From assembly GCA_026936335.1 (NCBI GenBank), contig JAPMXV010000058.1, forward strand, positions 299,226 to 363,225: a stretch of 64,000 nt of DNA, given 5' to 3'. Both the position numbers and the translations under genes were made by a program. This stretch comes from Mantamonas sphyraenae STR306. Its lineage: Eukaryota; Protista; CRuMs. A model generated the notes under the pieces. The model was not told the DNA's origin. It saw only the letters and a list, made by a program, of their open reading frames with translations, and did not search any database. The first letter of the stretch is position 1, and each line of letters starts with the position of its first letter. Shown here piece by piece: positions 23,867 through 46,824 of the stretch.

Positions 23867-23913
23867 ATCGTGTTTGGTTGTCCGTGACAATGAACATGAT
23901 TGGAGATGAGGGC

Positions 23914-24060
23914 TATTGTATTGGCCACATGGCTGTGCACATGGCCTTCGGCTAGTCGATGCACCACATGGTGCGACAAGGTAGTATGGGTAAGCCTGTG
24001 GATTTGGATCTGTAGGCCGATCATTTGCCTCCTTCGTCGCTTGGTACCCTTTGTCGCTTG
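23914..24060 (-). ncRNA. Putative omegaRNA scaffold of Fanzor A (ends AATACAATA; guide from flanking DNA)
   Basis: 105-nt non-coding tract from stop to element end, with hairpins (GCACC-ACAT-GGTGC, GGCCA..TGGCC, GCCT..AGGC). Terminal 9-mer is shared with element B. The 5' limit is inferred. Confidence 0.45.
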
Positions 24061-27000
24061 GGAGCATGCTGTTGTGGTTGTGACCCACCCGAATCCTCTT
24101 CTTCCCCCACTTCCTCATCTCTTCTCTTCTTGCTTCTCTCGCCTGCCTTGTCTGCTGCCTTGCGTTGCACCTTGATTTTCTTTGTTGGCTTCTCCATCCA
24201 GACGCCCGTGACAAAGAAGAGCATCTGCCGCCAGAAGATGCAGTGTGCAGAGCCTCGATCTCTCTGAACTGCCTGGTGCAAGTTGTGCTCACCCTCGCCC
24301 TCCATCTCTTTGCATGCGTGCCGTTGTGCAAAGCGTTTGAGCTGCTTGGTGGCGTCAAACATGTTGGAGTCGATGTCCGACAGGCAGTGGCTGCTGCACG
24401 TCCGCCATCGCCCAAACTTCTCAGCGCCAAAGTCGTCCAAGTTGTCGACAGCGCTGCCACAGAAGCACTGCTGCGATGTATACCTCTCGTCTGCTGCAAT
24501 GACGACAAAGTGGTTGGCCAGCATCTCCCGCATCTCCTGCGATTTCCCGCGTCCGCCAAACGTCTTTGTCGGCTGCAGCACAATCACCTGCTCCAGGCCC
24601 AGATGCGCGCGGAACTTGTGGATCACGGAGATCATCTCACGCACGCCTGCCATCCTTCGTTTGCGAAACGTTGCGTACTGCGCACGCATGTGCTTCGCAT
24701 CCTTGTGCAAATCTTTTCCGAAGACACGTTGCTTGTACTCCTCCTTGAAGTCCGTGTACGACGCCAGCACTCGGTCCTGCCCTGCCTTGTGTGCCTGCAC
24801 ATCGTGGCTGTCCAGGGGCAAGGTGGCCACATACAGCTGGCCGTTCCGCACAAAGATCGCCTCGACCCAGTCTCGTCCACGACCAGGGTCAATGCTGATC
24901 CACAGCACCTTGCGTGCATGCTCAAGGACTGCGTATCCATTCTTGGCAAAGGCCTTGACCTGCTCGACCAAGCCACGCTTCGGAACGGGGTACTTCGGGA
25001 AACCGGGAGCAATCTTCCGGATCTCGGTCGTCCACGTGTCTGGCATGCCCGTTGGGTTCAGCACGGCAAGGGCAATCAGCGCGTTCTTCTTGGGGTCCAG
25101 CAGAAGGGGCAGGAGATGAGCCATCCTTGGCCTGATCAATGTTGCGAGGCTCGCCGGTGAAGGCAGGAGAGTGTGAACTCTTGGTGGCTGTAACACCAAG
25201 GCTCGCCTGTACTTCCCCTGAGCGGCGATTCCACCAGAGAGCATGCGCATGCTGCTGGCGCTGACGTTCTTCAGCAGGCACCTTGCGTTTTTCGTGCCAA
25301 CGCCGCGCGTGAGCATGAGTATTGACTTCACGGGAACTGTTCGCAGCGGCCGTTTCCCTGCCCAGTGCTTGTTGGGCAGATCCTCGTCACTGTTGTTTTC
25401 TGGCATGCGACGAGCATACCGACACCGATACACTGCCTGCTTGAGCCATTTAGGGAGACTCGGGATGGCCTCATCCGTCAAAACCCACTCGCGTTCTTTC
25501 AGTGCATTCCACCAACCCGGATTGGCGTCCGACTTGGCGTTCGGGTTTGCGTCTGGGGGGTCGTTTGGGTTGGCGTCCGGGTTGGCGTCCGGGTTGGCGT
25601 CCGGGTTGGCGTCCGGGTTGGCGTCCGGGTTGGCGTCCGGGTTGGCGTCCGGGTTGGCGTCCGGGTTGGCGTCTTGGGGGTCATCTGGGTTGGCATTCCC
25701 GTTCGGCTTTCCATGGGCTTTCCACCTTGCTTCCATGGTGTTCACAAAGATCTTAAACGCGTACGTCTTGACGGAGTACGCGCCGAAGACGAACTGGCCG
25801 CCAATGTCAACCGGACCGGGAAACATCGCGTCAACACAGTCCAATGATGCTGCTGTCGATGCAATGGCGCGCTTTGCTTGTGTGCTTTTGAGATTGGTCT
25901 TCAGGTCGGGCTTGAGCATCACATCCAACAGCACAGACAACGCGTCCCGTTTGCCACGCACGTGCTTGCCGAGTTGATCCGAGAGACTTGCGCACACCTC
26001 CTCGTACGGGTCCCATGGAGGTACACCTTGTGAGCGCTGCGCATCCACAGAGAGCTGCGCATCCACGGAGGACTCCTGCACATCCATGGATGACTCCACA
26101 TCCACAGAGGGCAGCACATCCACGGAGGACTCCTGCACATCCATGGATGACTCCACATCCACAGAGGGCAGCACATCCACGGAGGACTCCTGCACATCCA
26201 TGGATGACTCCACATCCACAGAGGGCAGCACATCCACGGAGGACTCCTGCACATCCATGGATGACTCCACATCCACAGAGGGCAGCACATCCATGGAGGA
26301 CTCCTGCACATCCATGGAGGGCCCCTGGACCTCCACTGAAGAGTGAGCAGCAGCCGCGGCAGCAGCCTTTGTGGCCTTGTGGATGGGCTGAGAGAACACA
26401 AAGTCACGTGTGTCCTTTGTCGACACCTGGTGGGTTTGGAACGCCTTCTTGGTCTTTGCATAGCTTGTACGCATGAGCGCGGCGACGCTGGCCACGATGG
26501 CGGACATGGGCAGCTCGCTGGGCGCCCCGTTCCTCATCAGCGCCACGATCATCGGGTAGGCACACAAGGAGATGGCCGACTGCAGGCTGCCATTGAAGGC
26601 ACGAGCGATGTCATTGGCCATGCTCGACACGGGCGCCTCCGAAAGATCCACCTTCAGACGCGTGACCATGAAGGAAAAGTCGAAACCATGTTGACCATCG
26701 CCCGCCTTCTGTATCCCGTTCCTGGTAAATCGTACAGACTTGAGCTCCTCTGGGGTGTCCACGTTCTCCTTGAGTACCTTGAGGTTGTGCGTCGCCACTG
26801 TGCGCAGGGCCGTGAACGCTTCGAGCAGGTAGAAGGGCTTCACGCGGCTGTGATCTTCCACCATCCCGTCGACCACCATCCCGTCAATCATCGTCTGATC
26901 CTCTGTTGGCAGCTCCGCCTCATCCAGCTCCGCCTCATCCAGCTCCCCCTCCTCCTGCTCGTCGCTGCCATCCACCGATTGCTGACGTCCATGGGGCGCA

Positions 27001-30000
27001 GTGAACCATGCAGTTGGGTCCTTTTTCACCTCTGGAATCACCTGGTCGACGAACCATGCTCGAAGCAAGGCTGTTTGCACGAGCATACAGTCCGCCAATG
27101 CTCCAAGCACGTCAGCCTCGCTCTTTCCAAGCCCACGCACGTTCGCCTCCAGCTTCAGATTCTTCTTGAGATCGCTTTGGTACTCAACAAAATCGTGCTC
27201 CCTGATCGCCGTGGCCGAAGGCAGCAGCGTGGCGAAATCAAAACCGTGCGGGATCCACACGGGTCGCCCCCGCTGGCTTCCCTTCACGTCATCCTTGTCA
27301 TAAAAAGCATCCTTGAGCGGCGTCAATGTCTCGCCCTCTGTTGTTGCCCCTGTCTGGAGCGCCACCTCGAATAGGTCCGCACGGGTCGCTGATGATGGGG
27401 TCGCAGGAGGGCGAAGCACTTGGCCATCCTTCCGCAGGAGCACTGCCAGTTGTTTCTCGTGCCGTGCTGTGATCACATGTGGAACAGATGTCCACCTTTT
27501 AACGGCCTCACGGGAACCGAGTGACTCCTCCTTGTTCTTTTTGAAGACAGATGCATCAAAGCCAGCAGGAATCTCCTCCACAAGCTGCTCGATTTCGGCT
27601 TCAGTTGCCGTCAGCAGGTAGGGCACCGCACAGTCCTCCTCGTCCGGCTCCGTGGCGTCCTCCTGGCCCACCATGGCCTTCGCAACATCCTTGTGAATGC
27701 CCTGTGCGAGATGGAATGGCATCTCCTGCACGTGCAGCGTCCCTTCCCGTGCACTGTGGCCACGCCCGAGCTTGTACTCCATATGCATACGGGTGTCATC
27801 GGTGTTCTTCAGCTCTGGCTTGTGGTTGTAGGTGATGTTGACCTCAGTCAAGCCCAATGCTTGTGCCAACTCCTCCACTGAGCGCGGTTTCGGCTTGGCC
27901 TGCGTACACAGTCTGCTGAACGACTCCATCACGGTCTGCGCGCGTTGATGATCGAGACCATGCACTCCTCCAAGCCGCTGGCAGACTGCTTGCGCCAGGG
28001 CGACGGCCGACATCGGACCATGGTCACGTTCGGTCTCCTCCAGACCCACCGTGAGCAGCTGCTGCCTCAGCGCTTTAGTCTCTTCTTCCTTCTTTTCGTC
28101 GTCACTCTTGATCGATGTTTTCCCTCGCGATTTGGTCTTTGTCGTCTTCCCCTTTTTGGGCTTCTTCTTGACTCCCTTGGCCCAGGTTATCAGTTTCCAT
28201 GACGTCGCTTGGGCGTGCACTTTCTTCGTGTCCACCACATGGGCGTTGAAGATGTTGACAACCCGCAGCCCCGGAGCTGACCCATGGAGTGCGAGGCCAG
28301 CCATGAGACGCCCCTCGCGGTGGCACAGAACGATATCGTCCTCGGCCTGGTTTGTGACGAACTCGTCCAGTGACATCGTTGCCACTTGATGGGCAGCAAG
28401 GTAGTCGCGCATCACTGGCGCCAGGGTGGTGACAGTGGCACGAGCGGCGAACGCTCGCTGCTTGGCGTTGGAGAAGGTGTCCTGGGACGCAGCTGCACTC
28501 AGTTGCTGGTAGAAGCGTTGCAGCTCGGCTGGCGTGGCTCGACCTGCAAACAGTGCGGCTGTGGACACGACGTCGTCCACAACCACAACCGTGCGAGTCG
28601 AGAACAGCTTGCTCAATCTGGGCAACACAGTGTCGAGGATCGTGGTGACCCATTGCCAGGCAGAGGTGAACGTGGCGGGATGCGTGATGGTATGGTCGGA
28701 GAGGTGCAAGTAGCGAGCGGCGAGGCTGCTGAGGCCAACGTACACTGCGGCAAGGCGGGTTCCCCCCGACCCAGCGACGCCACGCTGCACACCACCCTCC
28801 ACGCCCTCGTTGACAGCAGAGTCAGCCAAAGGTGGGGGTTGCCAGTTGTCGTTCAACACGTCCAGACACTTTGCGGTCACTGGCGTCTTGTCGCCGGCTG
28901 AAGTCGGAAGCTGTGTCAGCTGCCCTGCTGCCGATGTCTGCGTAGCGGGCACACGGTTGAAACGGAGCCCACGCACAGATGCGGTTGACCCAGCAACCTG
29001 CACCCGAGTCGAAGGGGGCCTTCCTTGAGGCGCTGGCGTTGTCCCTCGAGCCCGTGCAGCGTGCGCGTACAAACGCCTTCCAGCAGCTGAGGTGGAGCTC
29101 TCCTTGCTCTGCATCACAACTCGCGGGCCCCTGATGGCCATGGGCTTGCGGAACACGTTTGATTTGTTGTCGAGAGCCACGGTGCCCATGGCAGACGGCA
29201 ACCGCCACTCCTCTTCCGGTTGAGACTTGAGGAAGACCAGTTTGAAACCCACGGGCGCACGCTCAGGCGCGGGCCACTCCTCGTCAGTCAGCTGCTGCGC
29301 AAGGTCATTGTACACACGGAATTTCCCTTCCGCCAGTGGAAGCCATGCCGTGTAGTGGTCCCCTTTGAAACAGAGCACCCCGAAGGGCACTTGCTGCTCT
29401 TGCTCCTGCAGGCCCTCGCCCTCACGCTGCTGGAGAGCACCTCGCTCCGCAAGCATTGCAACCCCTGCGGCGTCCGCTGGCTGGGGGGTACCACCATGCA
29501 ACATCTGGATGGGGAATCCAGAGTCGAATGCGACCTCGAGGCTGTGATGAAGATCTGCCGAGTCACCCCACAGGTCGTCACCCCCTGCGAGCGCTGTAGC
29601 GGCAAGGAAGAGATCGTTGCAGGCCACGGCATACATGTCGTCGTCACAGAACATGGCCATGCACCAGGTCTGCCGCAGAAGGGCCGTGTTGACGACGCTG
29701 GGGTCTGTGTGTGCCGGCGCAAAGAAGAGGGGGCGGGTTAGCACTCTCCTGTCAGCGGGATTGAGTGCGGTTTGAGCTTACCTTGCTCCCCAGGCTCAGG
29801 CCCCAACTGGGTCGGGTCGTTCCCGCCTGTCGTTGCCTCCAGCCATCCGAGAAGGTACTTGCACATGGACGTTCGCAGAGGTGGAGAGGCGCGCACGGTG
29901 GTGGCATAGGACGACACCCAGCATGCCACCTTCGCGGTGTTGACACCGTTGACGTTGGCGTACCCTTGCATGTCACCTTCGGGCTCGCCCAGATTTGCAG

Positions 30001-30157
30001 GTAGTCTTGTTCGCGGTGTGTACAGGGAAATCGACTCGTTGTCGGCCACACAGGTCGGACACACCAGCGACACGTGAGATGGGGCTGACGTTACCCAGCA
30101 CACCATGAGCACTGTCTCGTTGTTGCAGCTATGGTGCTGACACTTCAGAATCGACAT
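24021..30157 (-). CDS. Giant Fanzor/TnpB-like RuvC nuclease A (~2,019 aa; exons 30157-29782 and 29704-24021)
   Basis: RuvC-I ISIDPG (D 24888-90), RuvC-II ADERYTSQQCFCG (E 24486-88), RWRTCSSHC zinc ribbon, RuvC-III QRDRGSAHCI (D 24258-60). A 77-nt intron (GTAAGC...CTAAC...CACAG) joins the upstream exon in frame. Confidence 0.85.
25567..25673 (-). repeat. 12-bp tandem repeat, about 9 copies, encoding (NPDA)n inside Fanzor A
   Basis: GGGTTGGCGTCC repeated on the + strand. Confidence 0.95.
26042..26320 (-). repeat. 57-bp tandem repeat, about 5 copies, encoding SMDVQESSVDVLPSVDVES inside Fanzor A
   Basis: Near-identical head-to-tail in-frame units with no spacers. Confidence 0.95.
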
Positions 30158-30222
30158 TCTACACTCTTGAAACTATTGACTCCACCCGCGCACTTGGGCC
30201 AGCCGCCGCTTTTCAGAGCAGG

Positions 30223-30990
30223 TCAGTTGTCAAACGCCAAGCCTCGCGCCTCGCTGTCAAATGCCGCAGAAAGCTTGTTGCCCTCTCCGACGCCCCCGAG
30301 CACTTGCACACAGTTCACAAGCCCCATCCTCCACAGCCCTACCCACGTCACTTGCTGCTCTGGAAGGGCCCCGCGCACGCCGTTGCCGACGAGAACATCG
30401 AAACGCACGTTGGCCGTTTGCCGGCACAGAGGGTTGAAATCCTGCAGTTCACACTCACTGAGGAGCACAGTGGCCCATGTAACGATGTTGAGAAACAGAG
30501 GGAACAGAGGCTGGACCTGGACGACCAGGAGGGCGAGGAAGGTGGGGTGCTGAGTTTGCAGGCGTTGCACGTCACAATAGAGTCTCGGCTGTTTTGTACC
30601 TGGCAAACTCAATCCAGCAGGAGATAGATCACCGAGGAGGGGTTGAAAGGTAGGAGGCATGGCCACAACGCCAAGAAAAATTGATGAGTGGCTAGAAGTT
30701 GCCGCGTCGTCGCGCTGCGTCGTCGCCTCTACATGCAAATGTGGGTGTGATGTGCTGTCCCCGTTTTCAATATGCTCCCTGTACGACGCCCGATTGCCCA
30801 CCAAACCGGCAGACGCAGCGCTGGGCACCGCACGGGCAAAGGGTGATGCTTCGTTGCCGTCGCGTGACCAGCAAGTGGCACACGTCCACAGGAACCAAAC
30901 AGAGTCAAGTGGAAAGGCTGTGCGACTACACCAAGACACTACAGCAGGAAGCGCCCCTTGCCGTGGGGCCTTGGCCGTCCTCGACGACAC
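30223..30990 (-). CDS. Possible small accessory ORF or further upstream exon of element A (hypothetical)
   Basis: 255-codon open frame on the element's coding strand; the 3' half has coding-like codon usage; no recognisable motif. Confidence 0.3.
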   Translation of the reverse strand: MSSRTAKAPRQGALPAVVSWCSRTAFPLDSVWFLWTCATCWSRDGNEASPFARAVPSAASAGLVGNRASYREHIENGDSTSHPHLHVEATTQRDDAATSSHSSIFLGVVAMPPTFQPLLGDLSPAGLSLPGTKQPRLYCDVQRLQTQHPTFLALLVVQVQPLFPLFLNIVTWATVLLSECELQDFNPLCRQTANVRFDVLVGNGVRGALPEQQVTWVGLWRMGLVNCVQVLGGVGEGNKLSAAFDSEARGLAFDN

Positions 30991-31472
30991 AAAGAACCGC
31001 CTTGTCAGGCTACGTGAAAATCAGGTTGTGAATCCACGGTATCGGGCTTCACAGGCTGTCTCATGGTGTTTGTAGATACATATTGGGACATGGGTCTGCT
31101 GAGGGGAGACGCATGTGCACAATAATTGTACTGGGTGTGAAGGGGTGCATCTCAACGGCGTCAACCTGCATGCTGCTCCTCCCACGGGTGTTGGAGCCAA
31201 AACCAGAGGACCATGTGGCATGATGACTGTATGCAGGCGTTCCATGGATTGTTTATGCACGGGGCGCATGGTATGTTCGCAAAGCCCGGTTGCAAGGCCG
31301 TCGCTCCTGACTCGGGTGACTGCTGCCAGGGGAGGTGGGCACTATCCACGCCTTGTAGGTGCCCCACTTAGCCCTCCCTGCTTCTCTTTGAGCCCCCCCG
31401 ACACAAAGATGGCATTGGGAGTACGGGTTTTTCAGCACCAGCGTGCGCCCTGAATGGCTACGCTCCACGATC

Positions 31473-32492
31473 CTACATGCGGTACCCGCAGTGATGGACC
31501 CAGTTCCTCACATCAGCAGCCGTAACATGCCCCAATGCAGTACAAATCGCCGCGAATGTGCAAATGTCCACTCGATGAAATTCCCTGCGGAGGACCGCCT
31601 TGAACTTGCTAAACATGAGCTCGATGGGGTTGAGCGTAGGTGTGTAAGGCGGGAGAAACTCGACATCCACCCCATACCAGGTGCACAGCTGGCGTACAGC
31701 ATCGCCTTTGTGGATGGAGCAGTTGTCCATAACCAGAACTGTTTGGCGGCAATCTCGCATGCGGGGCAAGAGGTCTTGCTCCAGGAACTCCATAAACAGC
31801 TGCCGGTTGTATGACCCCTCTCGCATTGTGTACGCTACCAGTGGCGAGCGCCCACCGGTGCTGATGGCCGCCAGCACGCTGATGCGCTTTTGCTTGGGAT
31901 GGTTCTCCACAACGACCGCTGGTTGCCCACGTTTCGCACGACCATATCTCCTGTAGCACACTCTGTTGTTCACTGCAGTTTCGTCCAAGAAGACCACGTT
32001 CGGCGCTCGGAACACACCGCGAATCCTCATTGCTCGAGTAAACTCGCGTGTGCGCGCCACGGTGGATTCCCTGAACCGTTGCTTGGCGATAGCACTCACC
32101 TTCTTGCGAGTCAGTCCCATGCGCGCACAAGAACGGCGAATTGTGGACAGAGATACCACCTTGTTGCGATGAAGAGCAACGGCTACTTGCAACTCGTCCA
32201 GGTACAGTCGCGGATCATCGGCCACCTGTTCAGCAATGAACTGGTCGTCATTGGCATCCAGGAGACGCCTGGACGGTGGTTGGGCCACAAGAGGGCGTAC
32301 ATGGCCCATGGCTCGGTGTTGACGTACAATCTTGGACACGACGGAAGGAGACACACCGAGAGCCTCCGCTGTGCCTCTGCACGAAGGACGCAAGCTGGAT
32401 TGGTAGTGAAAGAGAATGCATTCTCGTTTGTTCGCCGAAAAGGCTTTGCCGTGGATGTATGACCCACCCGTTGCATTCGTTTTGAAGGTCAT
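31473..32492 (-). CDS. IS630/Tc1-mariner DD34E transposase (339 aa)
   Basis: HTH (TAEALGVSPSVVSKI; LYLDEL..VSLSTIRR..GLTRKK); VFLDET, LVMDNCSIH and FLPPYTPTLNPIE, with 34 residues between D2 and E. Intact frame. Confidence 0.95.
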   Translation of the reverse strand: MTFKTNATGGSYIHGKAFSANKRECILFHYQSSLRPSCRGTAEALGVSPSVVSKIVRQHRAMGHVRPLVAQPPSRRLLDANDDQFIAEQVADDPRLYLDELQVAVALHRNKVVSLSTIRRSCARMGLTRKKVSAIAKQRFRESTVARTREFTRAMRIRGVFRAPNVVFLDETAVNNRVCYRRYGRAKRGQPAVVVENHPKQKRISVLAAISTGGRSPLVAYTMREGSYNRQLFMEFLEQDLLPRMRDCRQTVLVMDNCSIHKGDAVRQLCTWYGVDVEFLPPYTPTLNPIELMFSKFKAVLRREFHRVDICTFAAICTALGHVTAADVRNWVHHCGYRM

Positions 32493-32577
32493 TTTTGTTT
32501 TGCGTTGCTGACCACAGCGCGCTGAACGCCACAATACAGGATCATGGGAGGATGGGGGGGGGGGAGGGTGGATACGT

Positions 32578-32620
32578 GTGCGTGCATTGGTGTGCATTGG
32601 TGTGCATTGGTGTGCATTGT
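32578..32620. repeat. 10-bp minisatellite (GTGCATTGGT), about 4 copies
   Basis: Seen directly, just outside the element A end. Confidence 0.85.
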
Positions 32621-32637
32621 GTGGGCAACAATCTACC

Positions 32638-33397
32638 TTACAGGCCCCAGGCCTTGCGCATCAGAAGGTCGAAGTACATGTCGTTGTCAATGCTTGCGCT
32701 GACGCCCGAGTAGTAATTGACAAATTCGTCCCTTGTGATAATGCCATCCTTGTTGTCCTGGTCGTCAAAGGACTCTAGGAACTCGGCAAAGACCTGGTCC
32801 TCAGTCCATTCACCACTGAGATACCTTGGGTGCTTGCGAGCGTTGTACTTGGCACGGATGTCCTCGATGGTGATGGTGCCGTCGTTGTTGGCGTCAAATT
32901 TGTCAAAGGCGAGGTCGATGAGGTTGAGGCGGAACTCGTTCATGGGCGGCCGTAGCTCGTGCAAGAACTCATCAAAACTGACCACTCCGTCGCCGTTCTC
33001 GTCAAAAACTGCACAGACGAGTTCGAGGTGCTGGAGAGACGCGTGGAATTGCCCGGCGGGGCGTGTGGCGCAGGAAAGTGTCAGCGGCGGGCGAGAGCAG
33101 AAAGAAGCCGTTGGTCTGCGTTGAGCTAGGCTGTCGTGCGGCACACAGCCAAACGCAGCGGGATTGGTGCGTGCGTACCTCGTCTGAAAGATGGACGCCA
33201 TAGTCATCCAGACCTGTCTTGAGCTCGTCATAGCTCAGGGTCTTGTTGTTGTCGTCGTCCATGATGCGAAAGCTGCGGCCAAAGCTCTTGATGCCGCTTA
33301 CGCCACGCTTGAGGCACGCGTTGCGGATGTACTCGATCACCTCGCCTGCAGTGGTGGTTTGCGGGTCGAATTCGGCGACCGAGGATGAGGAGCTCAT
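32638..33397 (-). CDS. CAPS: Calcyphosin-like EF-hand protein (1 intron)
   Basis: RGVSGIKSFGRSFRIMDDD, FLHELRPPMNEFR, YNARKHPRYLSGE, YYSGVSASIDNDMYF. Confidence 0.92.
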
Positions 33398-33500
33398 CGC
33401 TGGCAGGGGATTTTCTTTGGGTGCCTTGGCGCCGAAAGACAGGACGCTGGCAAAACGCTGGACTGGGACTGGACATGGGAAGGGGGGAGGATTACCCTGC

Positions 33501-36449: not shown

Positions 36450-36476
36450 GGGGTGCGGTGAAGTTTGTTTGCGTGG

Positions 36477-38412
36477 TCACGGGCGCCGGGTGGAATGCTT
36501 GTTGTTGGAGGGGCGGCGAGAAGGTCGAGAGGAGCGTCGAGGGCCTGGAGGGCGTTGGGAGGAGCGGAAGGAGGAGGAGGAGGATGAGGAGGAGGATGAG
36601 GAGGAGCGAGAACGGGGGCGGTTGGATGAGGAGGAGGAGGATCGAGAGCGGGGGCGGTGGGTGGAGGAGGAAGATGGTGAGGAGGATGGGGAGAAGGAGC
36701 GGCGACGGGGGGGTCGAGGAGAGCGGTTGCGGGGAGATGGGGAGGAACGGGAATCGTTCTCGTTGCGCGGGGCGCGAGGACCATCGTTGTCTCGTGGGCG
36801 TGAGCGACGGCGGGGGCGGGACGAATGGGAAGAGGAGTGGGAAAAGTCGGAGGAGGACGGGGAGGATGAGCGGGGATGAGGCGGGCGGGATGAGCGGCGG
36901 TGACCGGGAGAAGAGTCACGGTCTGTGCGCGGCGTGCGAGGACCATTGTGGTCATCAAAGTCACGGCGTGGTCGGCGGGAGGAGGTATGCTTGTGGGAAG
37001 AGTCACGGTAGATGTTTGTAGGGCGGCGGTTGGGAGGGGCAGAGGGAGAGTCGCGGGGCGGATTGCGGCGGTAGTGGTCGTCGGGCCCAGTGAGGTGGAG
37101 GGCAAGGCCGTTGTTGAGGGCGTTTTGGATGTCGCGCTGGGTTCTACGGTCGGAGGGCTTGACGAGGGAGGAGACGAGGCCCGAGGCGCCTGCGCGGCCG
37201 GTGCGGCCTGCGCGGTGGAGAAAGTCGACCATGTCGCGGGGAAAGTCGTACATGACGACGTGGTCGACGTGTGTGGTATCGAGGCCGCGGGAGAGGATGT
37301 CTGTGGTGACGAGGATGTGGTTGTTGCCGCGCTGGTAGTCGTCCCAGATCTTGGAGCGTGCACGAGGCGGGATCTGGCCATGGATGCAGGTTGTGGCGAG
37401 GCCTGCGTCGGAGAGGGTGTGGTCAAGTGCACGTGCGCTGTCGACGGTGTTGCAAAAGATGATTGTCTTGCGGTGTGCGTTCTGGGCGAGGAGGGCGACA
37501 AGGCGCTGGTTCTTGTTGTCGTAGGTGACGGGTTGGAAATCAAAGCGGACGTCCGGGTTGAGATGGTGGGTGCCGGACACAAGGACCTGGTGGACGGGTT
37601 CGTGCAGTTCGAGGGTCCTGTGAACGCGCTTGAGCTCGTTGGGGGCGGTGGCACTGGTCATGACGAGGCGGAGGTCGTTGCGGGCAAACATGGGCGCACA
37701 GAGGAGCTTGAGGTCGTCGAGGAACCCCTGGCCGAGCATAGTGTCAGCCTCGTCGATGATGAGATGCTGGACGGAGCCGAGGAGAAGGTTCTTGGCGTCG
37801 CGATGCTGCAGAAGGCGACCAACAGTGCCGATGACGACATCATTGGTCATGGCAAGGCTCTTGCGTTGGACACGGCGGTTGTCACCGCCAAGGGCCTTTG
37901 TGCCGGAGATCTTTGCGTGGTGGCAGAGGGTTTTGAGAACGGACTGCGGGACAGGGGTCAGTGATGGGATACGGGTAGTATGGGTGGGGGATTCGGGATG
38001 GCGGGGGTGGACGTACGGCAACTTGGGAACCCAGCTCGCGGTTGGGCACAATGACGAGGGCGCGGGGTCGCTTGTGTTGGGAGCCCATCTGGCCTGGCAA
38101 AAGTCCGCGGTGTTTCTCGTCGAGCTTGAGGAGGTGGACAAGGGGAGCGAGGTAGGCGAGGGTCTTGCCCGAACCCGTGGGTGCAGTGAAGGAGAGGCTG
38201 CTGGTCGGATGGGCCAGCTGCCAGGGGATGACCTGAGCCTGGACAGGGGTAGGCTGGGTGGCATTGAGCTCCTCGAGGGCGTCTGCAATGGGCTGGGGCA
38301 GGCCGAGGGTGCGCATGGCAGAGGACATGGGGCGGGAAGAGTGCGAGATGAGGGTGTGGCGGCTAGCAACGGCGGCGGACGACGTGGCTGAACGGCGGCA
38401 TCTTGAAAACAT
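36477..38412 (-). CDS. DEAD-box RNA helicase (DDX28/RH39-like, probably organellar; 1 intron)
   Basis: PTPVQ, APTGSGKT, VPNREL, DEAD, SAT, SRGLD, HRAGRTGRAG; R/S-rich tail. Confidence 0.9.
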
Positions 38413-38576
38413 GATGGGAGCGCCAGCGGGGCCAGGAAAAAGCGAAGAAGGTGAGGAATTGCTGGTGGAGTAGATGGGTGGAGAGTGTGGATACGGAGTT
38501 GTTGTGTTGAGCGTGGGTGGTGAGTAGGGGCAAAGAGGATGAGCTGGTGTCCGCCGTGGTGGCTTTGAAGGAGGTT

Positions 38577-38675
38577 GCAGATGATGAATGATTGTGATGA
38601 CGAATCTGAGGGTGAAGGTTAGAGAGCACCCGTCGTGATTAATTCACATTAATGGCTACATGAGATTGCTGATGC
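38577..38675 (+). ncRNA. Candidate C/D-box snoRNA
   Basis: GCA-g-ATGATGA (box C) ... CTGA-TGC (box D plus terminal stem), internal CTGA, and hairpins GGGTG/CACCC and GTGA/TCAC, in an AT-richer intergenic patch. Confidence 0.3.
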
Positions 38676-39008
38676 GTTTCCGCACGGCGGCGGACACCGG
38701 CATCCATAAGTGTGGGGAGACCGGGAAGGAGGTGTGCGGGCTGCGGGAAGTGAGGTGGACAGCTGCATGCAAAGAGGGTACGTGAAGGCTCACTCTTGAG
38801 TTTTTTGGCCGCGTACAGACAAGGATGGCAAGCGGACGGGTTGTCTTTGAGGCCATAGTGAGCGCCGGTTGAACTGGAATCGTTTGCTGAGGGTCATTTG
38901 ATTTGAGCAGGGCCAGCAGGTCCTAGGCACGCGGGAAAGTGTGCATGTGCGGTGGAGGGAATTGGGAGTGATCCCTCTCCCCAGGGTTTGGTGCAAGGGA
39001 AGGAGGAC

Positions 39009-41335
39009 ATGGCAAGGAAGAAGCTGAGGAATGGCGGAGACGGGGACGTCCTGGGAGGTGAGTGGTGGTGTGTGGTGGATAGTGTGTGGTGTGTGTGTGT
39101 GGGGGGGGCGGGGCGTGAGAGGAACGTGGCTGAGATGATGATTGTCGAAGGCATTTGTCTGATGTGCGCCGTGTTCGGTTGTCGAACACGGTTTTAGCCC
39201 TTGACGAGAATCGACAGCTACCAAAACACTGGCTGATCAGCACTGTTCCGTGTGGGGGCGGGAAGGGAAAGGAGGTTGGGGGGTTGATCAGGGTGTGGAG
39301 CCAGCTGACAGTATTCTGTTCTGCTCTAGGATGCACAGATAGATGTGTGGAGTACGGATGGAGAATGGAGGGTGAGGAGTGGGGAGTGGAGAGGTGGGAA
39401 TGGGGACTTGAATGGAAAGTTTGAGTCGAACGAGTCGGAATCATCGTTGTCGCGCGTGTCTTGGTGGACAGGGAAGGCGAGGGTGAGAGGGAAGAGGAGC
39501 CTTGCGGGAGTAGAGGCCGAGGAGGAAGTGGAGGCAGTGTTTTGTGGGAGGGCCACGCGTCGTGGGAGCCAACGAATTCGTTGTGGAGACAGAGGCATGG
39601 ACTCGTCAGCAGCCAAACAAGCGCGCGGGCGCGAACGGGTAGGTTTTTGTAACGGTGGCCAAGGCGTTCACCAGGGAACGGGAGCTGACATGGAGAGAGG
39701 TGTGTATGTTTGGGACACGTGGGATTGCGTGGCATTGGTGTGTGGGCACAGCTTCGGAGGCTGAGGGAAAAGCAGGCGCAGGAGAGCAAGGGGGAAGAGG
39801 CGACTGAGCAAAAGGCGGCTGCGCTGGGAATGCCCGAAACCCCGTCACGGGACGTGTCGTGGACAGCGACAGGGGAGGAGACGCCCCAGAGGATGGGAGC
39901 GAGCCCGGCAGCGAGGAGCATAGGGAGCGAAGCCGGAGTGGTGTCGCTGGCGTCGCTGGACGACTCGCTGGGAGACGCGGAAGAGGAAGCAGAAGCAGAA
40001 GAGAGCCAGACGGCAGCGGGGTTCGTGCAGAATGGACCGGTGAGGGTGGACGGAGGCAACGGGATGGGTATGAACACACAAAACACACTGGAGGGCCTGA
40101 AACTGAACTACGATTACACGACACCTGTGAAACGGGAAGAGCGGGAAGAGAAATCGTCGCAAGAAGAACAAGAGCGTGTGGCTGAGCTGCAGGCAACAGT
40201 GACGAGGCAGGCGGAAGAAATCGAGAGCATGCGGGGAAAGCTGGAGAAGGTGAACCGCGGGGCAAGCGCTGTGCGCGCTTCGGGAGGGGAGCTGCTGCGG
40301 AAGAACAAAGAGCTGCGCGGGCAGGTGGAGGAGCTGGAGCAGCGGCTGAGAGAGGTTCAAGAGGAGCACGGGGCCAAGGACAGGCTGTACAGCGAGGTGC
40401 AGCAGGCGTTGCACAAGCAGCGGCAGGAAAACGAACTGCTGCAGGCAAAGCTAAAGGCAAAGACGCTGAAGCAGCTCGGGGACGAGAAAGCGGGCCTGCT
40501 GTCGAAGTTGAGCGACCAGGAGAGGAGGATAGAGGGACTGGTGAAAGAAGTGGAGGATAGCAAGCACTTTCTGCAACAGGAGTCGAACAAGGTGCTGGAG
40601 CTGTACCAGAAACAGCGTGTGACGGAGGCGCTGGTGGCAGAACGCGAGGCAGAGGTGGAGGCGGCCAAACAGGACATCCGTGTGCTGCAGCAGAAGCTAG
40701 AGGCGGAAATGGCCATGGTGAACGGGTTTGGCAGGGAAAAGCAGACGTTGGTGGGCCAGATCCAGGAAAGCGGGGAGCGAATCGACGCTCTCCTGAAGGA
40801 GTCGCGCGAGTGGAGGCAGAAGTACGAGGCGGAGCAGCAGCAAAGAGTGATGCTGAACGAGCATCTGCGGCACATGGAGCGCATGCGCGACGGGCAGGTG
40901 GAGTTTATGCACGCGCAGCAAGTCAAAGTGGCGAGGCTGCAGAAACGACTGGAGGAGGCCGGTCTGGCAGTGGAGGACGAAGAAGAAGGAGACACGGGGG
41001 AGGACAAGGCGGGCGTGGACAAACAGAGCGAAGGAGAGGGAGATGGAGAGTCGCACGTAAGCGCGACGATCGATTGGGGCAAGGTGGCGGCGCACAAGCA
41101 AAACGGGCACCAGCACGTGGTGGATGTACAGGGTGGCGGAACGGATGGGCTGTCGTTGGGCATGGGTGCCCAACAGGAGGCGGCGGCGGAGGAGGAGGAT
41201 GGAGAGGAAAGTGGGGGAGGGGGCGGGCTCATGGGCTGGATCGGGTGGTTCTTTGGGATTGAAGAGGAAGAGGTGGAAGAAGTGGAGGTGGGTGGACTGC
41301 ACACAATGAGGCGGACACATGATACGATTGTATAG
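39009..41335 (+). CDS. Coiled-coil protein (multi-exon; 5' exons uncertain)
   Basis: Long heptad-rich ORF 39710-41335; upstream GT..AG introns; C-terminal MGWIGWFFG motif. Confidence 0.65.
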
Positions 41336-44300
41336 GTGTTTTCGTTTGAGTGACTCTTTTGTCTTGACCGGCGTGCGTGCCCTCACCCAACACAGAATGG
41401 TTGCCACCACACGCAGTCGTCGGCAGATCCATGGGAAGTACACAGCCGAACTGAGTCCCACGGAGTATGAGGCGGCCGTTCTGTACGAGAGGTACAGGCA
41501 CAGCGATCGCGTGGGATCGCCCCAAGTGCATCCGGATGCCTGGGCCTTCTTGTGCCACTTCACCAGCCACCGGCACCGCAGCCGAGTGGCCATTGCCTCT
41601 GAAGTCCATGCCCGTGTGGTGCTCAAGATCCTGAGGTACAGGCTAAGGGAGCCACGAAAACTGGACGACAACGAACAGCTGCCGCTTGCACAGGCCCTCT
41701 TTGCACTCGTTGCTGGCGTAGGTGTCCTTGACGTGAAGACCAAGGCCTTGTACATGTTTAAACAGCACTCAACCGTGATTCCAACAAAACCAATAGTTAT
41801 GGAGGCGTCCTACTCAGCTCCAGACGTGCGAGACAACCAGGAAGGGCCTGCGTTTGACCTGAAAAAGCTTGTGGAAAATGCAGCCAGCAATGGCAACCTG
41901 TGTCACGCCTCATGCAAATGGTGTCGACAGAGCACAGGAACCCCATCAGAGAACACACCGGAACTCGTCACAAACTACGTGCACACAGGGTACGACCTGA
42001 CGGGGGTAAGCCTGTTGCTGTTGGAGCAAGTGGAGAAGAAATTTGCCAACGACTTCAGTGTCCGCCCCGTGTTCCCCGTGCCTGGCAGCTTCAGCTCCGT
42101 AGCATTCAATGTTACGCGTCGCAAGGATCTTATCTCGCGCCCTGTACTCCGCATGGAAAACACCCTGTCCGAGAGGGAGCTGCATGACATGCGTGGTGGG
42201 GGCGCACGCAATCCGCTGGTCTCCGAGGACACGTCGGCAACGGAGGTGGGTGCCTCTGTAATGTATGTGCTGCACATCGAGAACCTTGTCATGTCCTGCA
42301 TGGCGCGTGTGCACACGACAGCAGAGTCAGCATCGTCGAGCTCATCGCTCCTCCAGCGTGCTGTGGAAGACGTGATGGCTGACGTACGTGACAAGGCGCG
42401 GCGTTGGAACCTGCGTGATGGGGATGTGACTGTGTTCCTGCGTGGTGAAACGCACACAACCATGTCCACGCTGGTCAACCAAACCAACCGCAGAGCGATC
42501 ATCTTCGAGGCCACGCTCGCGCACAAGCACAACGAGACCATGGAGCAGCTGCTGGATACCCTGAGTGCAGCGTGCGAACGCATGGGTTTCAACGTGGAAT
42601 GCTGCGCGAACCCCGTGTCAACCTGTTTGTCCAGGGCCTGCGCGCAAACAACCATCATCCAGAGTCCCCTCAGCGACGGATCTCTGATGCGAGAAGGCGT
42701 TTGGATCCAAGGCGAATCGGAACACACTATCACACGTGACAACCACATCCACAGGCTTGTGGTGGGGTTGTTGTGTGGTTGCTCAACACTTCCCATCACC
42801 CTTTCCACCGTAGGCAAGACGGGCAAGATGTTGGACTGTGTAAGGACGTGGCAATTGCGGGGCGAGCTCGTGGACGCGGAAAAGGCGGTGCGTCTTGCTG
42901 CAAGGTCGGATTCACGGGCAGCGGAAAAGCGGCAGCTCACCGATGAGGTCAACAGGGCGATAGCGGCTGTGGTGGACGACGCGACACTGGAAGAGCTGAA
43001 CGGAATGATGCGTACACCAGCAGTGGGCGCTTCTGTGGGCGCGAGCGACAACGACGATCACCACGACAATCATGAGGAGTCTCAGACACTCTTCGATGCA
43101 TGCCGTTTGATGCCAAGACGAGGGAGTGGTGTTGTGGCCGAGGCAATTTCGGTGGCGGGCGAAGGTTCAAGCGTTGGCGAGGCCATCAGCGCCATCGAGG
43201 AAGCTCTTCAGCAAGAGTGCAAGGAAAGAAAGCCACTGCCACCGGGGAGAACAAGCGTGTTTGTTCGGCGACGTGAGGTACACGGGCAGCGCTTGCGGCT
43301 ATTCGTGGCACGTGACTCCCTTGAGTCAGCGTCAATTCTGCGGGCCATGGGCACCCAGCACGTACGAGATGCAATGACGGAAGCAGGCTTGGATGACTAC
43401 GCCACGGCTGTGGACAAGATGGTGCAGGCAGAGAAGGGTTTGGTCCAGGCGGCGCGAACGGAGGCAAGCACAACCGCGTATGTAAGCAACAAGAAATGGG
43501 ACGCGTTTGTGGACGCCGTGCGCAAGGAGAACAGTGGAATGCCTGTGTCCAAGGCGAACAAGGTGGTGCCTGCGGCCACACTCCAGAAACTAAGGCGGGA
43601 GGCGCCGTCTTCACTGAAATCTCTCAGGATTCCCAAAGACACTACGTGCCTGCGAGTGACGAACGACGACAGTGGCAAGAAGAGCAACACTCGCCATGAT
43701 CCGAGGCCTAGTTTTGGTCCCGACTGGCCAGCAACGCACCAAGAACTCCTCTGCAAACTGCTGATGTGGGTTGGTGACGCCACCGTGACGCACACCGACA
43801 CTATCAGCCACATGACGACAAATTATACCCGCTCTCTTGGAGCAATTCACGAGACGAAGCCTGTTCCAATCCCTCCCAAGATCACTGCGGTGATAGACAA
43901 GTGGAACCATGCGGGGTACGAGGCGCAACGCACCCGAACGATGCTGGATTTGGAGGCCCTGGTTCCAAACCACAACATGGATGTCCAGGCGTGCGTGGAC
44001 TTCCCCGGCATGGTTGAGGCGATGCTTCTCACTCCGCTGCCCGAAGACGTGTGCGGCCGAGTGCAGATCACGGAGGCGCAGGCGGAAGGAAGCACACATT
44101 GGGAGACAACGGCGTTCAAGGCTGGAGCGAAGCGGTTTCAAGAAGACGCAAAGAGGATGCTGCCACACATTGTGTATGCGTTGAGGGAGTTTGCACGGAT
44201 CTACTTCACAGCGGCAGGCCTCGCGTCCACTCGCCGCGAGTGTGATAGGTTGTTTCTGGAGGTGACCAAATTCGAGATCAAGTCAGCACGGCGACACCTG

Positions 44301-46813
44301 CGCCAAGAACACGGTGTGCAGCTGGGAGAGGAGGACGAGGAAGAGGAGGAGGACGAGGACGAGGACGAGGAGGAAGATGAGGAGGACGAGGGGCGGGAAG
44401 AGGAGGACGAGGAGGACGAGGACGAGGACGAGGACACACGGGCGAATCCGAGCGAGCAGAAGGACGAGGAGGCAAAGGCAAAGGCACGTGACCCTGTGGA
44501 AGAATTCCTCGAGCTCACTGCCCCTGAACTGCGTGCGGTCTACCGCCGGCGCAGACCAAGCGATAGACCCGAGCGACCCCAGGTGGAGGATTTGGGTCTG
44601 GACGAAGGCCAGCCATCACGCGCAGCCCTCAAAAACAGGCTGTTGCTGTTCAGCCTGGTGCTGGCAGACGGCGTATTTGGCAAGCGCGGCATTCACGCCG
44701 ACAACACCGACGCCATGTCGCATGCGGTGGCTGTGTGGCTGGTGAGGGCAGCCGGTGGTTCCCAGCGCGCATATCTTCCCACCCCAAAACGCCTGTCCAC
44801 CCCGCAGACGATCATGACCTCCCAAGGTGGTCTAGATATTGCTTTGCTGCCGCTGCTTCATGGAAACGACCGGAAACCTTCCACCGAGGCGCCGGAAAAC
44901 GCTGCACTGTGGGACATGAAGCGCCAGCTCATGGACGACGCGGGCAAACTACCACGGGAGGTACGGCTTGTCCACGCCGCGTCACAGGTGGTGGGTTACC
45001 AGCTAGGCTTGCGGTTGGAGGAGCACGTGAAGAATGCTGTGGTCGAGATCAAGGAGACTGCACTGGCGTCAGCCAAGCAGGAGGGGGAAATGGCCGAGGT
45101 GGACGAGCTGGAAAGTGCGCTATCGGCGCTGAAAACGCGCCCTGCTGCAGAGCCAAATGACACACTGGTGTACCACGATGTTATCAGGGACGTCTTTCTG
45201 GCCCAAGAGGCAAGGAAGAAGAAGACAAAGACGAAGTCGGGAATGCGCGGGCCAAATCCGTTTCTCGCGGTTCAGAGAGCAAACGACGTCATTTTCAAGG
45301 GAGGTGAAGCCCGGATCCACCGGTTCAAGCCTAAACCGTGGGGATATCAGCAGCTGTTCACCCTTCCAGAGACAACACGAGGAGGACGGCGAGTTGGATT
45401 TCCGTGCCAAGAATCTGACGAACCCGTGCCAGCTGTTGCCTTGTTCAATTCCATGGTTCAGTGGGCAGGGGGTGGATCGGGATCAACGTTGGCCTCGCCC
45501 AAGCCCCCGGCCACCATCAGTGCACACCGGCTGTCCAACTTGGGCTGGAATCTATGGCGAAATTTTGGGCACAACTGGATGCCCAAGTTGCAAGCATCGC
45601 TGACAACCCATGCTGGAGACAACATGGCTGCGACCATCGACCGTGTTGTGGGTCTCATCAAGCACTATGCCCCTCCTTCGTCAAAGGAGCTCTCGGTGGC
45701 TTTGAAGGCCCTGGAATTGAATATCGAGATGCAAGATGAGCTGGTTCGCAAATGGGACGACGTGGCGCGTGCAGCTGGCACAGCAACAGGCAAACGCCTC
45801 GCGCTGTCCACATCCTGGCTGCCGCGAACTGAAGAGGCAGGGGCGTCGTCTGCATCATCGTCGTCGTCGTCATCGTCGTCGTCTTCTTCGTCGTCCGACA
45901 CGTCAATGACACGGTGGGCATCGAGTGTTCATGGTCTGTGTGCAGGCTACGACCCAGGTGTGTACCAGCACGTTGGAGCCCTGGTTTACTACTATGAGCG
46001 TGTTTGTGTTTCTCGTTTCGCAGACGTGTGCTGCATTGAGTACGGTCTGGCGTTTGACCTCAAGGGCACCAATGTCCGCTACGAGCAGAGGCGATCGGGC
46101 CATGCAGAGATCTCCAACAAGCTCAGCAAGCTGGGCAAGCAGCTTGCCAACGCTGTGGACGCGGCAAAGAATTCGAAGATCGAGGAGGAGATGAAAGCAT
46201 TGACCGAAAAGTTGAGGCCAATCCAACAGCATATGGCCAAGCTGATCAAACACGGAAGCGCGGCAGTGATGGCTGACCTCCAACGACAGTGCAACCACCG
46301 AATTCACGTCGGATATGGAGCGGCGCCCGTGGTTGCAAGTGTGCCAGTGCGCACTGATGCCGCCCAACTCGCCTGCGTCGCTACGGTGACGATGACTCAC
46401 GAAGCACAGACATCCAAACACTCTGCGTACGACTGTAAAGCCGTTCGAAAGCATGCTTGGAGTGTCGACAAGAACGGGTCACGGAACGATCGGTGGTATG
46501 TGCACGAAGTGGCCACCAAGACGCTGCCGGATGGAGAGGAGTGGGTGGCGCACAAGGATCGCAGTGCTGCCATCAACATGGCCAACAAATGCCATGCAGC
46601 TCGGTGTGGTGGTGTCGAGCTGTGGCTTTTCACATGGGTGTGGAGCGGCAAACGTGCGCATCTACAAGAGGCGGCCCGCCAGGCCATGCATGGTGGACAA
46701 GATGCAGGAAATGGGGGACAAAATGTCCAAGTGGAGTTGTAGATGATTGTTGTGGTGAAATGCTTGTTTAAACTAGCGCTTGTAAGCAGCGCGAGGTGAT
46801 TTGCAAAATACAA
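41333..46813 (+). mobile_element. Element B: non-autonomous insertion carrying a giant Fanzor-like gene (~5.5 kb)
   Basis: TATAG direct repeat at 41331-35 and 46814-18; the 3' end AATACAA|TA is identical to element A. Excision keeps the host stop and leaves a 6-nt gap between convergent stops. Confidence 0.65.
41397..46742 (+). CDS. Giant Fanzor/TnpB-like RuvC nuclease B (~1,781 aa)
   Basis: RuvC-I CAGYDPG (D 45951-53), helical insert, IHVGYG, RuvC-II THEAQTSK (E 46401-03), RuvC-III HKDRSAAINM (D 46557-59). First plausible ATG at 41397. Confidence 0.8.
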   Translation: MVATTRSRRQIHGKYTAELSPTEYEAAVLYERYRHSDRVGSPQVHPDAWAFLCHFTSHRHRSRVAIASEVHARVVLKILRYRLREPRKLDDNEQLPLAQALFALVAGVGVLDVKTKALYMFKQHSTVIPTKPIVMEASYSAPDVRDNQEGPAFDLKKLVENAASNGNLCHASCKWCRQSTGTPSENTPELVTNYVHTGYDLTGVSLLLLEQVEKKFANDFSVRPVFPVPGSFSSVAFNVTRRKDLISRPVLRMENTLSERELHDMRGGGARNPLVSEDTSATEVGASVMYVLHIENLVMSCMARVHTTAESASSSSSLLQRAVEDVMADVRDKARRWNLRDGDVTVFLRGETHTTMSTLVNQTNRRAIIFEATLAHKHNETMEQLLDTLSAACERMGFNVECCANPVSTCLSRACAQTTIIQSPLSDGSLMREGVWIQGESEHTITRDNHIHRLVVGLLCGCSTLPITLSTVGKTGKMLDCVRTWQLRGELVDAEKAVRLAARSDSRAAEKRQLTDEVNRAIAAVVDDATLEELNGMMRTPAVGASVGASDNDDHHDNHEESQTLFDACRLMPRRGSGVVAEAISVAGEGSSVGEAISAIEEALQQECKERKPLPPGRTSVFVRRREVHGQRLRLFVARDSLESASILRAMGTQHVRDAMTEAGLDDYATAVDKMVQAEKGLVQAARTEASTTAYVSNKKWDAFVDAVRKENSGMPVSKANKVVPAATLQKLRREAPSSLKSLRIPKDTTCLRVTNDDSGKKSNTRHDPRPSFGPDWPATHQELLCKLLMWVGDATVTHTDTISHMTTNYTRSLGAIHETKPVPIPPKITAVIDKWNHAGYEAQRTRTMLDLEALVPNHNMDVQACVDFPGMVEAMLLTPLPEDVCGRVQITEAQAEGSTHWETTAFKAGAKRFQEDAKRMLPHIVYALREFARIYFTAAGLASTRRECDRLFLEVTKFEIKSARRHLRQEHGVQLGEEDEEEEEDEDEDEEEDEEDEGREEEDEEDEDEDEDTRANPSEQKDEEAKAKARDPVEEFLELTAPELRAVYRRRRPSDRPERPQVEDLGLDEGQPSRAALKNRLLLFSLVLADGVFGKRGIHADNTDAMSHAVAVWLVRAAGGSQRAYLPTPKRLSTPQTIMTSQGGLDIALLPLLHGNDRKPSTEAPENAALWDMKRQLMDDAGKLPREVRLVHAASQVVGYQLGLRLEEHVKNAVVEIKETALASAKQEGEMAEVDELESALSALKTRPAAEPNDTLVYHDVIRDVFLAQEARKKKTKTKSGMRGPNPFLAVQRANDVIFKGGEARIHRFKPKPWGYQQLFTLPETTRGGRRVGFPCQESDEPVPAVALFNSMVQWAGGGSGSTLASPKPPATISAHRLSNLGWNLWRNFGHNWMPKLQASLTTHAGDNMAATIDRVVGLIKHYAPPSSKELSVALKALELNIEMQDELVRKWDDVARAAGTATGKRLALSTSWLPRTEEAGASSASSSSSSSSSSSSSSDTSMTRWASSVHGLCAGYDPGVYQHVGALVYYYERVCVSRFADVCCIEYGLAFDLKGTNVRYEQRRSGHAEISNKLSKLGKQLANAVDAAKNSKIEEEMKALTEKLRPIQQHMAKLIKHGSAAVMADLQRQCNHRIHVGYGAAPVVASVPVRTDAAQLACVATVTMTHEAQTSKHSAYDCKAVRKHAWSVDKNGSRNDRWYVHEVATKTLPDGEEWVAHKDRSAAINMANKCHAARCGGVELWLFTWVWSGKRAHLQEAARQAMHGGQDAGNGGQNVQVEL

Positions 46814-46815
46814 TA
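46700..46815 (+). ncRNA. Putative omegaRNA scaffold of Fanzor B
   Basis: About 70-nt AT-richer tract after the stop, with a GCGCT..AGCGC hairpin, ending AATACAATA. The 5' limit is inferred. Confidence 0.4.
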
Positions 46816-46824
46816 TAGCGGGGG

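Follow-up and report, generated by a model that had tools for sequence, protein, structure and literature searches.

Giant Fanzor1-like proteins with putative protease and 5'-nuclease regions in two unrelated mobile elements of Mantamonas sphyraenae

Fanzors are the eukaryotic cousins of CRISPR-Cas12 and cut DNA under RNA guidance. A 64,000-nucleotide stretch of the genome of the deep-branching protist Mantamonas sphyraenae (hereafter the window; C58:299226-363225, contigs being given as C plus a number) holds two giant open reading frames (ORFs), A and B, each for a protein roughly threefold larger than usual and each within a mobile element. Our reading, to which we give a probability of about 70%, is that each ORF encodes a highly divergent Fanzor1, that is, an RNA-guided RuvC endonuclease with extra fused domains. 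It draws on the multi-copy mobility of the elements, their catalytic Asp-Glu-Asp (D-E-D) triads, the linkage of A to a transposase, conserved right ends, selection on the coding sequences, a fold in B and motifs of ubiquitin-specific protease (USP) type in A. M. sphyraenae is a diploid CRuMs protist (PMC10492846), and copies and families of the two ORFs were sought throughout its 25,061,354-bp assembly of 78 contigs.

An earlier note on this DNA had described two long ORFs, each ending in three RuvC motifs with an intact D-E-D triad. Both ORFs and all six motifs were found at the ends described (Table 1). The three catalytic residues are invariant in 12 divergent families of the genome, which rules out chance motifs, and the RuvC-III Asp is invariant in 51 sequences. 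The RuvC-I motif reads DPG in A and B and DIG, DWG or DTG in sister families. Giant ORFs of 1,574-2,058 codons make up at least 12 families in this genome, with dozens of copies. Contigs C1, C59, C2, C10, C30, C29 and C63 hold nine or more additional families of giant Fanzor-like ORFs, of 1,574-1,896 codons. Family D, one of these, is paired in four places with another family of Tc1 transposases, which shares about 47% identity with that of A. The same note had placed the Glu just before a zinc ribbon in both proteins. This holds for A, where the Glu stands six residues ahead of the first Cys of a four-Cys (C4) finger (Pfam PF07282, E = 0.005, below the cut-off), but not for B, where subfamilies B1, B2 and B3 have a single Cys after the Glu and no ribbon.

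Kinship with Fanzor1 was reached through intermediate sequences. A profile of nine families, B not among them, matched 63 proteins among 1.8 billion, the best being an M. plastica transcript; most of its long matches were proteins of 600-900 aa with the Pfam domain Cas12f1-like_TNB. Enlarged by these matches and compared with the PDB, the profile retrieved SpuFz1 (E = 1e-33), PpFz1 (1e-31), GtFz1 (9e-23), Fanzor2 (1e-8) and TnpB (4e-5). These values support Fanzor1, rather than Fanzor2 or TnpB, as the nearest outside relative of A and B, by a transitive link. A hidden Markov model (HMM) of the outside matches alone found A at E = 1e-10 and found none of the shuffled sequences. By language-model features A and B lay nearest to the same TNB/DUF8286 clusters (0.96 and 0.95, respectively). 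Pfam gave no significant direct match for either window protein, and length-limited word-index searches returned no full-length homologue of A and, for P0064, a transcript product of M. plastica, only itself.

For B, we count the register of the motifs as support. A Foldseek search with a model of its C-terminal region placed PpFz1 first, and the top 33 rows were nearly all Fanzor, TnpB or Cas12 proteins, but the best E was only 3e-3. A VIA comparison of the B RuvC model, built from a seeded alignment, matched Cas12o1 with a Z-score of 8.7 and a root mean square deviation (rmsd) of 3.2 over 121 aligned residues; a wide VIA search of this model was dominated by a helical hairpin. In a tree, A and B fell far apart and B stood next to another M. 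plastica protein, but the tree was poorly supported and carried no labelled Fanzor references. Judged by their sequences, A and B are unusual Fanzor1 proteins, A with the expected features and B without the zinc finger; the call for B stands on weaker evidence than that for A, and B most likely works like a Fanzor despite the lost finger. The idea of giant, multi-domain Fanzor-like proteins in mobile elements is supported by the DPG motif, the repositioned Glu, the RuvC-III Asp and the Fanzor1-type relatives.

The extra length is large, as the earlier note had said, but it is not one anonymous block of more than 1,000 aa of N-terminal cargo. It consists of an N-terminal extension of ∼800-970 aa, with a USP-like protease and/or a 5'-nuclease fold, and the rest is a core expanded by low-complexity inserts. 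The boundary of the core was set by eye and appears to fall around residue 860 in A and residue 830 in B; WED and REC regions were likewise placed upstream of RuvC by eye.

Protein A probably carries a USP-like, deubiquitinase-type protease with a Cys/His/Asp triad. Its putative Cys box lies on a first exon upstream of the long ORF, joined to it by a predicted intron that has an identical phase in the diverged copy on C68. The corresponding stretch of the C17 copy is free of stops and in frame, so the reading frame there continues naturally. With exon 1 the protein would have ∼2,019 aa, a length obtained by arithmetic, the exons having been searched separately. A profile of five sequences covering the His-box region gave 27 PDB matches, all of them USPs, with a best E of 2e-4. 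Three diverged A subfamilies retain the Cys box, His box and Asn/Asp, as do families D and E, where an equivalent Cys box lies on an upstream exon of each family; family E matches Pfam UCH at E = 6e-4. The USP-like domain of A is short, below the Pfam cut-off and split by the intron.

Protein B has a 5'-nuclease fold of the FEN1/T5 exonuclease/XPG kind in its N-terminal part, suspected from motifs prior to the structure model. In a VIA search with the N-terminal model, 5' nucleases occupied 11 of the top 12 rows, over residues 287-530, and the first atlas row was a 5'-3' exonuclease. Read against known FEN1 motifs, the metal-binding acids (D, D, ExE, DxD, D) are mostly replaced in B1-B3, and because of this loss the domain in the window proteins is expected to bind DNA ends without catalysis. 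By the same motif reading, sister families F, G and H keep EAE and DSD, a full FEN1-type acidic set, and P0064 keeps EAD and DTD; we infer that the domain is catalytic in F, G and H. Pfam found no PIN/XPG family, and a profile of F, G and H compared with the PDB did not reach FEN1. In A, motifs read by eye make a degenerate fold of this kind probable; hhalign among the shallow profiles available for this region gave no significant match. Two proteins from outside the assembly, P0052 (1,224 aa, Logan) and P0064 (1,048 aa), also appear by motif reading to combine a PIN/XPG-like N terminus with a Fanzor1-type end.

The insertions are not a pair of related mariner-type elements, as the earlier note had supposed. 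They are two independent insertions in unrelated multi-copy elements: A and B gave no blastp match to each other, and ordinary host genes, IFT80 among them, occupy the interval that separates the two. Only the last seven bases of their right ends are common to them. With no blastp match and different element types, a single system or a pair of sister insertions is rejected. Element A is a Tc1/IS630 element and not a mariner, because its DDE_3 protein has DD34E rather than DD34D spacing; B has no transposase, TA duplication or terminal inverted repeat (TIR). Bacterial contamination is ruled out by the introns, the IFT80 neighbor and the chromosome-scale contig. Each insertion is flanked on both sides by the 3' ends of converging host genes (23866-23916, 32534-32638, 41335 and 46813-46825), and in about half of the other copies an opposite-strand ORF ends within 90 bases of the right end, a raw count made without a control.

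Ten right ends of element A were found in the genome. The transposase gene lies upstream of the giant ORF, on the same strand, in all ten copies and is truncated in two. The target duplication is TA preceded by TG in six of the ten, the window copy included, where TG precedes the left TA on the coding strand. Of the other four copies, two carry TG/TG or TT/TT as a matched pair, a third shows 14 duplicated bp together with 29 filler bases, and the last is cut short on the left. A search for an empty site to confirm the boundary found none. The TIRs match over only ∼4 bp, or 7 if the TGTA target is counted. In Spu-1, two fixed bases precede the TA and CATA is the target-adjacent motif (TAM) (PMC10432273), and we predict TGTA as the TAM of A on this ground. 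After the stop codon both elements keep a conserved right-end tail of 71-105 nt with a hairpin (71 nt in B and 105 nt in A, by coordinates), the candidate omegaRNA scaffold. Among the A and B right ends in the genome, short elements with the guide region alone were few or absent.

Several features of the A copies stand beside these. Between the transposase stop and exon 1 lie 1.3 kb (30158-31472), the first 650 bases of which are 83% conserved in the C68 copy without a clear shared ORF; an Rfam search of this stretch gave no match. In several copies the final part of the ORF, beyond the RuvC-III motif, contains a tandem duplication of ∼144 bases. Copies C17:156449 and C41:146533 share their left flank and differ in their right flanks, which may reflect recombination between copies, flank transduction or misassembly. 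C29:70988-74816 is a truncated copy without the nuclease end, and C34:228268-230730 is a decayed, more distant relative with frameshifts.

Element B also has ten right ends in the genome, and nine were traced to three subfamilies, whose RuvC regions are 100, 83 and about 61% identical. No transposase match was found near the traced copies. The window copy, of subfamily B1, is flanked by a 5-bp duplication; in sister copies the duplications reach lengths of 11 and 12 bp, whereas mismatched flank pairs mostly give 2-4 bp. The first ATG, at 41319, is not part of the element, so that 41397 is the probable start of the protein. Elements B, A, D and E have the terminal bases AATACA(A/G) in common. 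The B hairpin, 18 bases before the element end, keeps all its pairs and has one compensatory change between subfamilies, weak evidence given seven related sequences.

Purifying selection acts on every region measured. The ratio of nonsynonymous to synonymous substitution rates (dN/dS) ranges from 0.09 to 0.44 along A, with 0.11-0.33 in exon 1, and from 0.17 to 0.53 along B where synonymous sites are unsaturated. The RuvC end is the most conserved part of the proteins. Between A and the C68 copy, synonymous divergence is 0.10 at the RuvC end and 0.42-0.83 upstream, and the two transposases are 99% identical; B1 and B2 repeat the pattern (0.35 versus about 0.7). Copies are thus alike at their ends and differ in between, a pattern that suggests that subfamilies have exchanged sequence by recombination or conversion.

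Table 1. Coordinates of features of elements A and B in the window
Feature	Position	Strand	Details
Element A	23916-32534	-	Tc1/IS630-type transposon, 8,619 bp
TA target duplication of A	23914-23915 (right), 32535-32536 (left)		TG before left copy on coding strand
A transposase	31473-32489	-	338 aa; Pfam DDE_3, E = 6e-27; paired-type helix-turn-helix
ORF A	24021-29744	-	1,907 codons; ISIDPG 1616, DERYTS 1752, RDRGSA 1828
Exon 1 of protein A (predicted)	30157-29782	-	376 nt; four-Cys zinc-ribbon-like motif; USP-type Cys box, candidate catalytic C79
Predicted intron of A	29705-29781	-	77 nt, phase-1 GT-AG
Exon 2 of protein A	24021-29704	-	Predicted spliced model
USP-type His box of A	29295-29387	-	H130, N146/D147 of long ORF (box at residues 120-150)
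Probable 5'-nuclease (PIN/FEN1) fold of A, degenerate	27945-28877	-	Motif reading by eye
Tandem repeats of A	25517-26318	-	In-frame, 12-nt and 57-nt; low-complexity linkers, variable between copies
RuvC and zinc finger of A	24195-24917	-	D1619 (DPG), E1753, C1760/1762/1783/1787, D1829
Candidate omegaRNA scaffold of A	23916-24020	-	9-bp hairpin 23923-23946; predicted guide, host flank below 23914
Element B, subfamily B1	41336-46813	+	5,478 bp
5-bp target duplication of B	41331-41335 and 46814-46818		Includes upstream host ORF stop codon
ORF B	41319-46742	+	1,807 codons; GYDPG 1543, HEAQTSK 1694, KDRSAAIN 1746
Protein B (probable start)	41397-46742	+	∼1,781 aa
5'-nuclease (FEN1/T5 exo/XPG) fold of B	42246-42977	+	Structure-model comparison
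RuvC of B	45936-46628	+	D1545 (DPG), E1695, D1747
Candidate omegaRNA scaffold of B	46743-46813	+	Hairpin 46773-46795

Elsewhere in the window, a 684-aa ORF with an internal repeat and no Pfam match (61442-63496) is partly similar in its DNA to the stretch 28763-28818 of ORF A. Positions 49684-60864 hold a tandem pair, at 5.69-kb spacing, of genes for large membrane proteins with an SBBP beta-propeller, IPT/TIG repeats and a TRP-like multi-pass region. At 17867-18609 there is a 259-bp tandem repeat of 2.9 copies, 97% identical, whose 69-bp sub-units look like IQ-motif coding repeats.

If A and B are Fanzor1 nucleases, the analogy of TnpB and SpuFz1 suggests the most likely mechanism. Movement of A into TG^TA sites would be the work of its DD34E transposase. 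A guide RNA drawn from the right end of the element plus the host flank would direct the Fanzor ribonucleoprotein, with the predicted TAM TGTA for A, to cut the emptied or homologous empty site, and repair of the break from a filled copy would restore the element. The 5'-nuclease fold could bind or guide the cut ends, and the USP-like domain could remove ubiquitin from the Fanzor itself or from chromatin at the break. B, without a transposase, would probably be moved in trans or copied during break repair, in keeping with its variable target duplications. A broader and tentative proposal, which we hold to be possible but rather doubtful, is a radiation of giant Fanzor1 proteins into multi-enzyme RNA-guided machines that unite RuvC with 5'-end processing and, in some, an active deubiquitinase. 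Such machines would cut an empty site, influence how it is repaired and insert a copy of the element, in part with no transposase involved, and would exchange their middle modules by recombination.

A number of results weigh against the assignment of A and B as giant Fanzor1 nucleases. Searches by phmmer with the C termini of A and B against the PDB returned antibody and DARPin noise only, profiles made from Mantamonas sequences alone reached no solved Fanzor in the PDB, and hhalign of A-type against B-type profiles gave no match. The HMM of outside matches missed B, for which hhalign gave E = 0.044. The B RuvC model has a confidence (pLDDT) of 62, came from an alignment seeded with Fanzor-like rows and gave no Foldseek E below 0.001. 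The model of B residues 1-807 is poor overall (pLDDT 40.5), and its best VIA row has a middling Z-score (7.3; rmsd 3.6, 126 aligned). The USP call for A rests on a short His box, and the continuous protease region of the C17 copy had no match in the PDB. The right-end folds are barely better than those of shuffled sequences (z about -1.4 for A), and splicing, expression and the omegaRNAs of A and B are predictions from the DNA letters.

The giant protein might itself be the mobilizer, by guided cutting, end processing and a homing-type copy-in, with the Tc1 transposase of A secondary. B and most other families have recent near-identical copies yet no transposase, target duplications reach 5, 11, 12 and 14 bp, some with filler, and the mosaic copies favor copy-in. 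The clean TA duplications in most A copies speak for the transposase, however, B could be moved in trans given the terminal bases that A, B, D and E share, and a guide taken from the donor flank fails to explain new, unrelated target sites; we regard this explanation as unlikely. A lower standing still falls to an RNA-guided binder or regulator, whose ribonucleoprotein would recruit an active deubiquitinase or a DNA-end-binding domain to chromatin, perhaps protecting the element from silencing, with little cutting, especially by B. CrFNuc bound RNA and did not cut (PMC10530073), and B lacks both the C4 finger and the acids of its 5'-nuclease fold; the invariance of the triad and the strong conservation of the RuvC end make such a role improbable.

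Self-processing of A by a papain-fold domain, releasing a Fanzor of normal size and with ubiquitin not the substrate, would suit the low-complexity linkers between its modules and a USP domain that is short and without clear ubiquitin-binding fingers. We consider this polyprotein model very improbable: B-type proteins are equally large with no protease motif seen, and the PDB matches of the His-box profile include no viral processing proteases. Least credible is that the motifs arose by chance or that the N-terminal parts are passive captured host sequence. The want of a direct significant PDB or Pfam match for either window protein would fit, but this account is largely refuted by the invariant triad, by open frames of 1,570-2,060 codons kept in dozens of copies and by dN/dS well below 1.

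Described Fanzor1 proteins are single-purpose nucleases of 600-800 aa, whereas one 25-Mb genome here holds at least 12 families of 1,570-2,060 aa with repair-related domains. Provided that they are active, such proteins would offer a natural parallel to engineered Cas-exonuclease fusions and would be, as far as our literature search reached, the first case of an OMEGA effector linked to ubiquitin removal; that search found no paper on a Fanzor-XPG or Fanzor-deubiquitinase fusion, most subscription papers lying outside its reach. Within 8.6 kb, element A combines its transposase with a predicted TAM, a candidate guide scaffold and the catalytic residues. These families bring within direct experimental reach the open question of what a Fanzor contributes to its transposon and of how an element in a eukaryote directs the repair of breaks so that it is itself copied.

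A and B share with SpuFz1, PpFz1 and GtFz1 the DPG motif, the RuvC-III Asp and, in A, the Glu six residues before the finger. They resemble Fanzor1 elements in the short conserved right end after the stop, and A also in that two fixed bases precede its TA duplication, as in the CATA of Spu-1 (PMC10432273). They differ in length (1,780-2,020 aa, against mostly 600-700 and about 800 at most; PMC11423790, PMC10711439), in the putative fused USP-like and 5'-nuclease-like domains, in the absence of the C4 finger from B and in the ∼4-bp TIRs of A. Fanzor1 inside Tc1/mariner elements is already known, as are algal CRe elements with variable target duplications (PMC3627910). Element A is like PGv-1 and PUl-1 (Bao and Jurka 2013, PMC3627910) in having a DDE transposase upstream of the Fanzor and a TA duplication, but is DD34E rather than DD34D, with asymmetric ends and some variable duplications; B has none of these features. 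B is comparable to the non-autonomous Chlamydomonas elements CRe-1, CRe-2 and CRe-3 (PMC3627910), which are likewise Fanzor-only with a sub-terminal hairpin and variable target duplications; unlike them, its right end resembles that of the Tc1-type element A, and no Helitron partner turned up, none having been looked for. Residues of about 310-550 of B share the fold of FEN1, XPG, EXO1 and T5 exonuclease, with a helix-three-turn-helix (H3TH)-like segment, but are fused to a RuvC nuclease and have lost most active-site acids, which F, G, H and P0064 keep. The Cys box, His box and Asn/Asp of the A copies and of families D and E recall the USPs (peptidase C19), from which the putative domain differs in being short, intron-split, below the Pfam cut-off and fused to a Fanzor.

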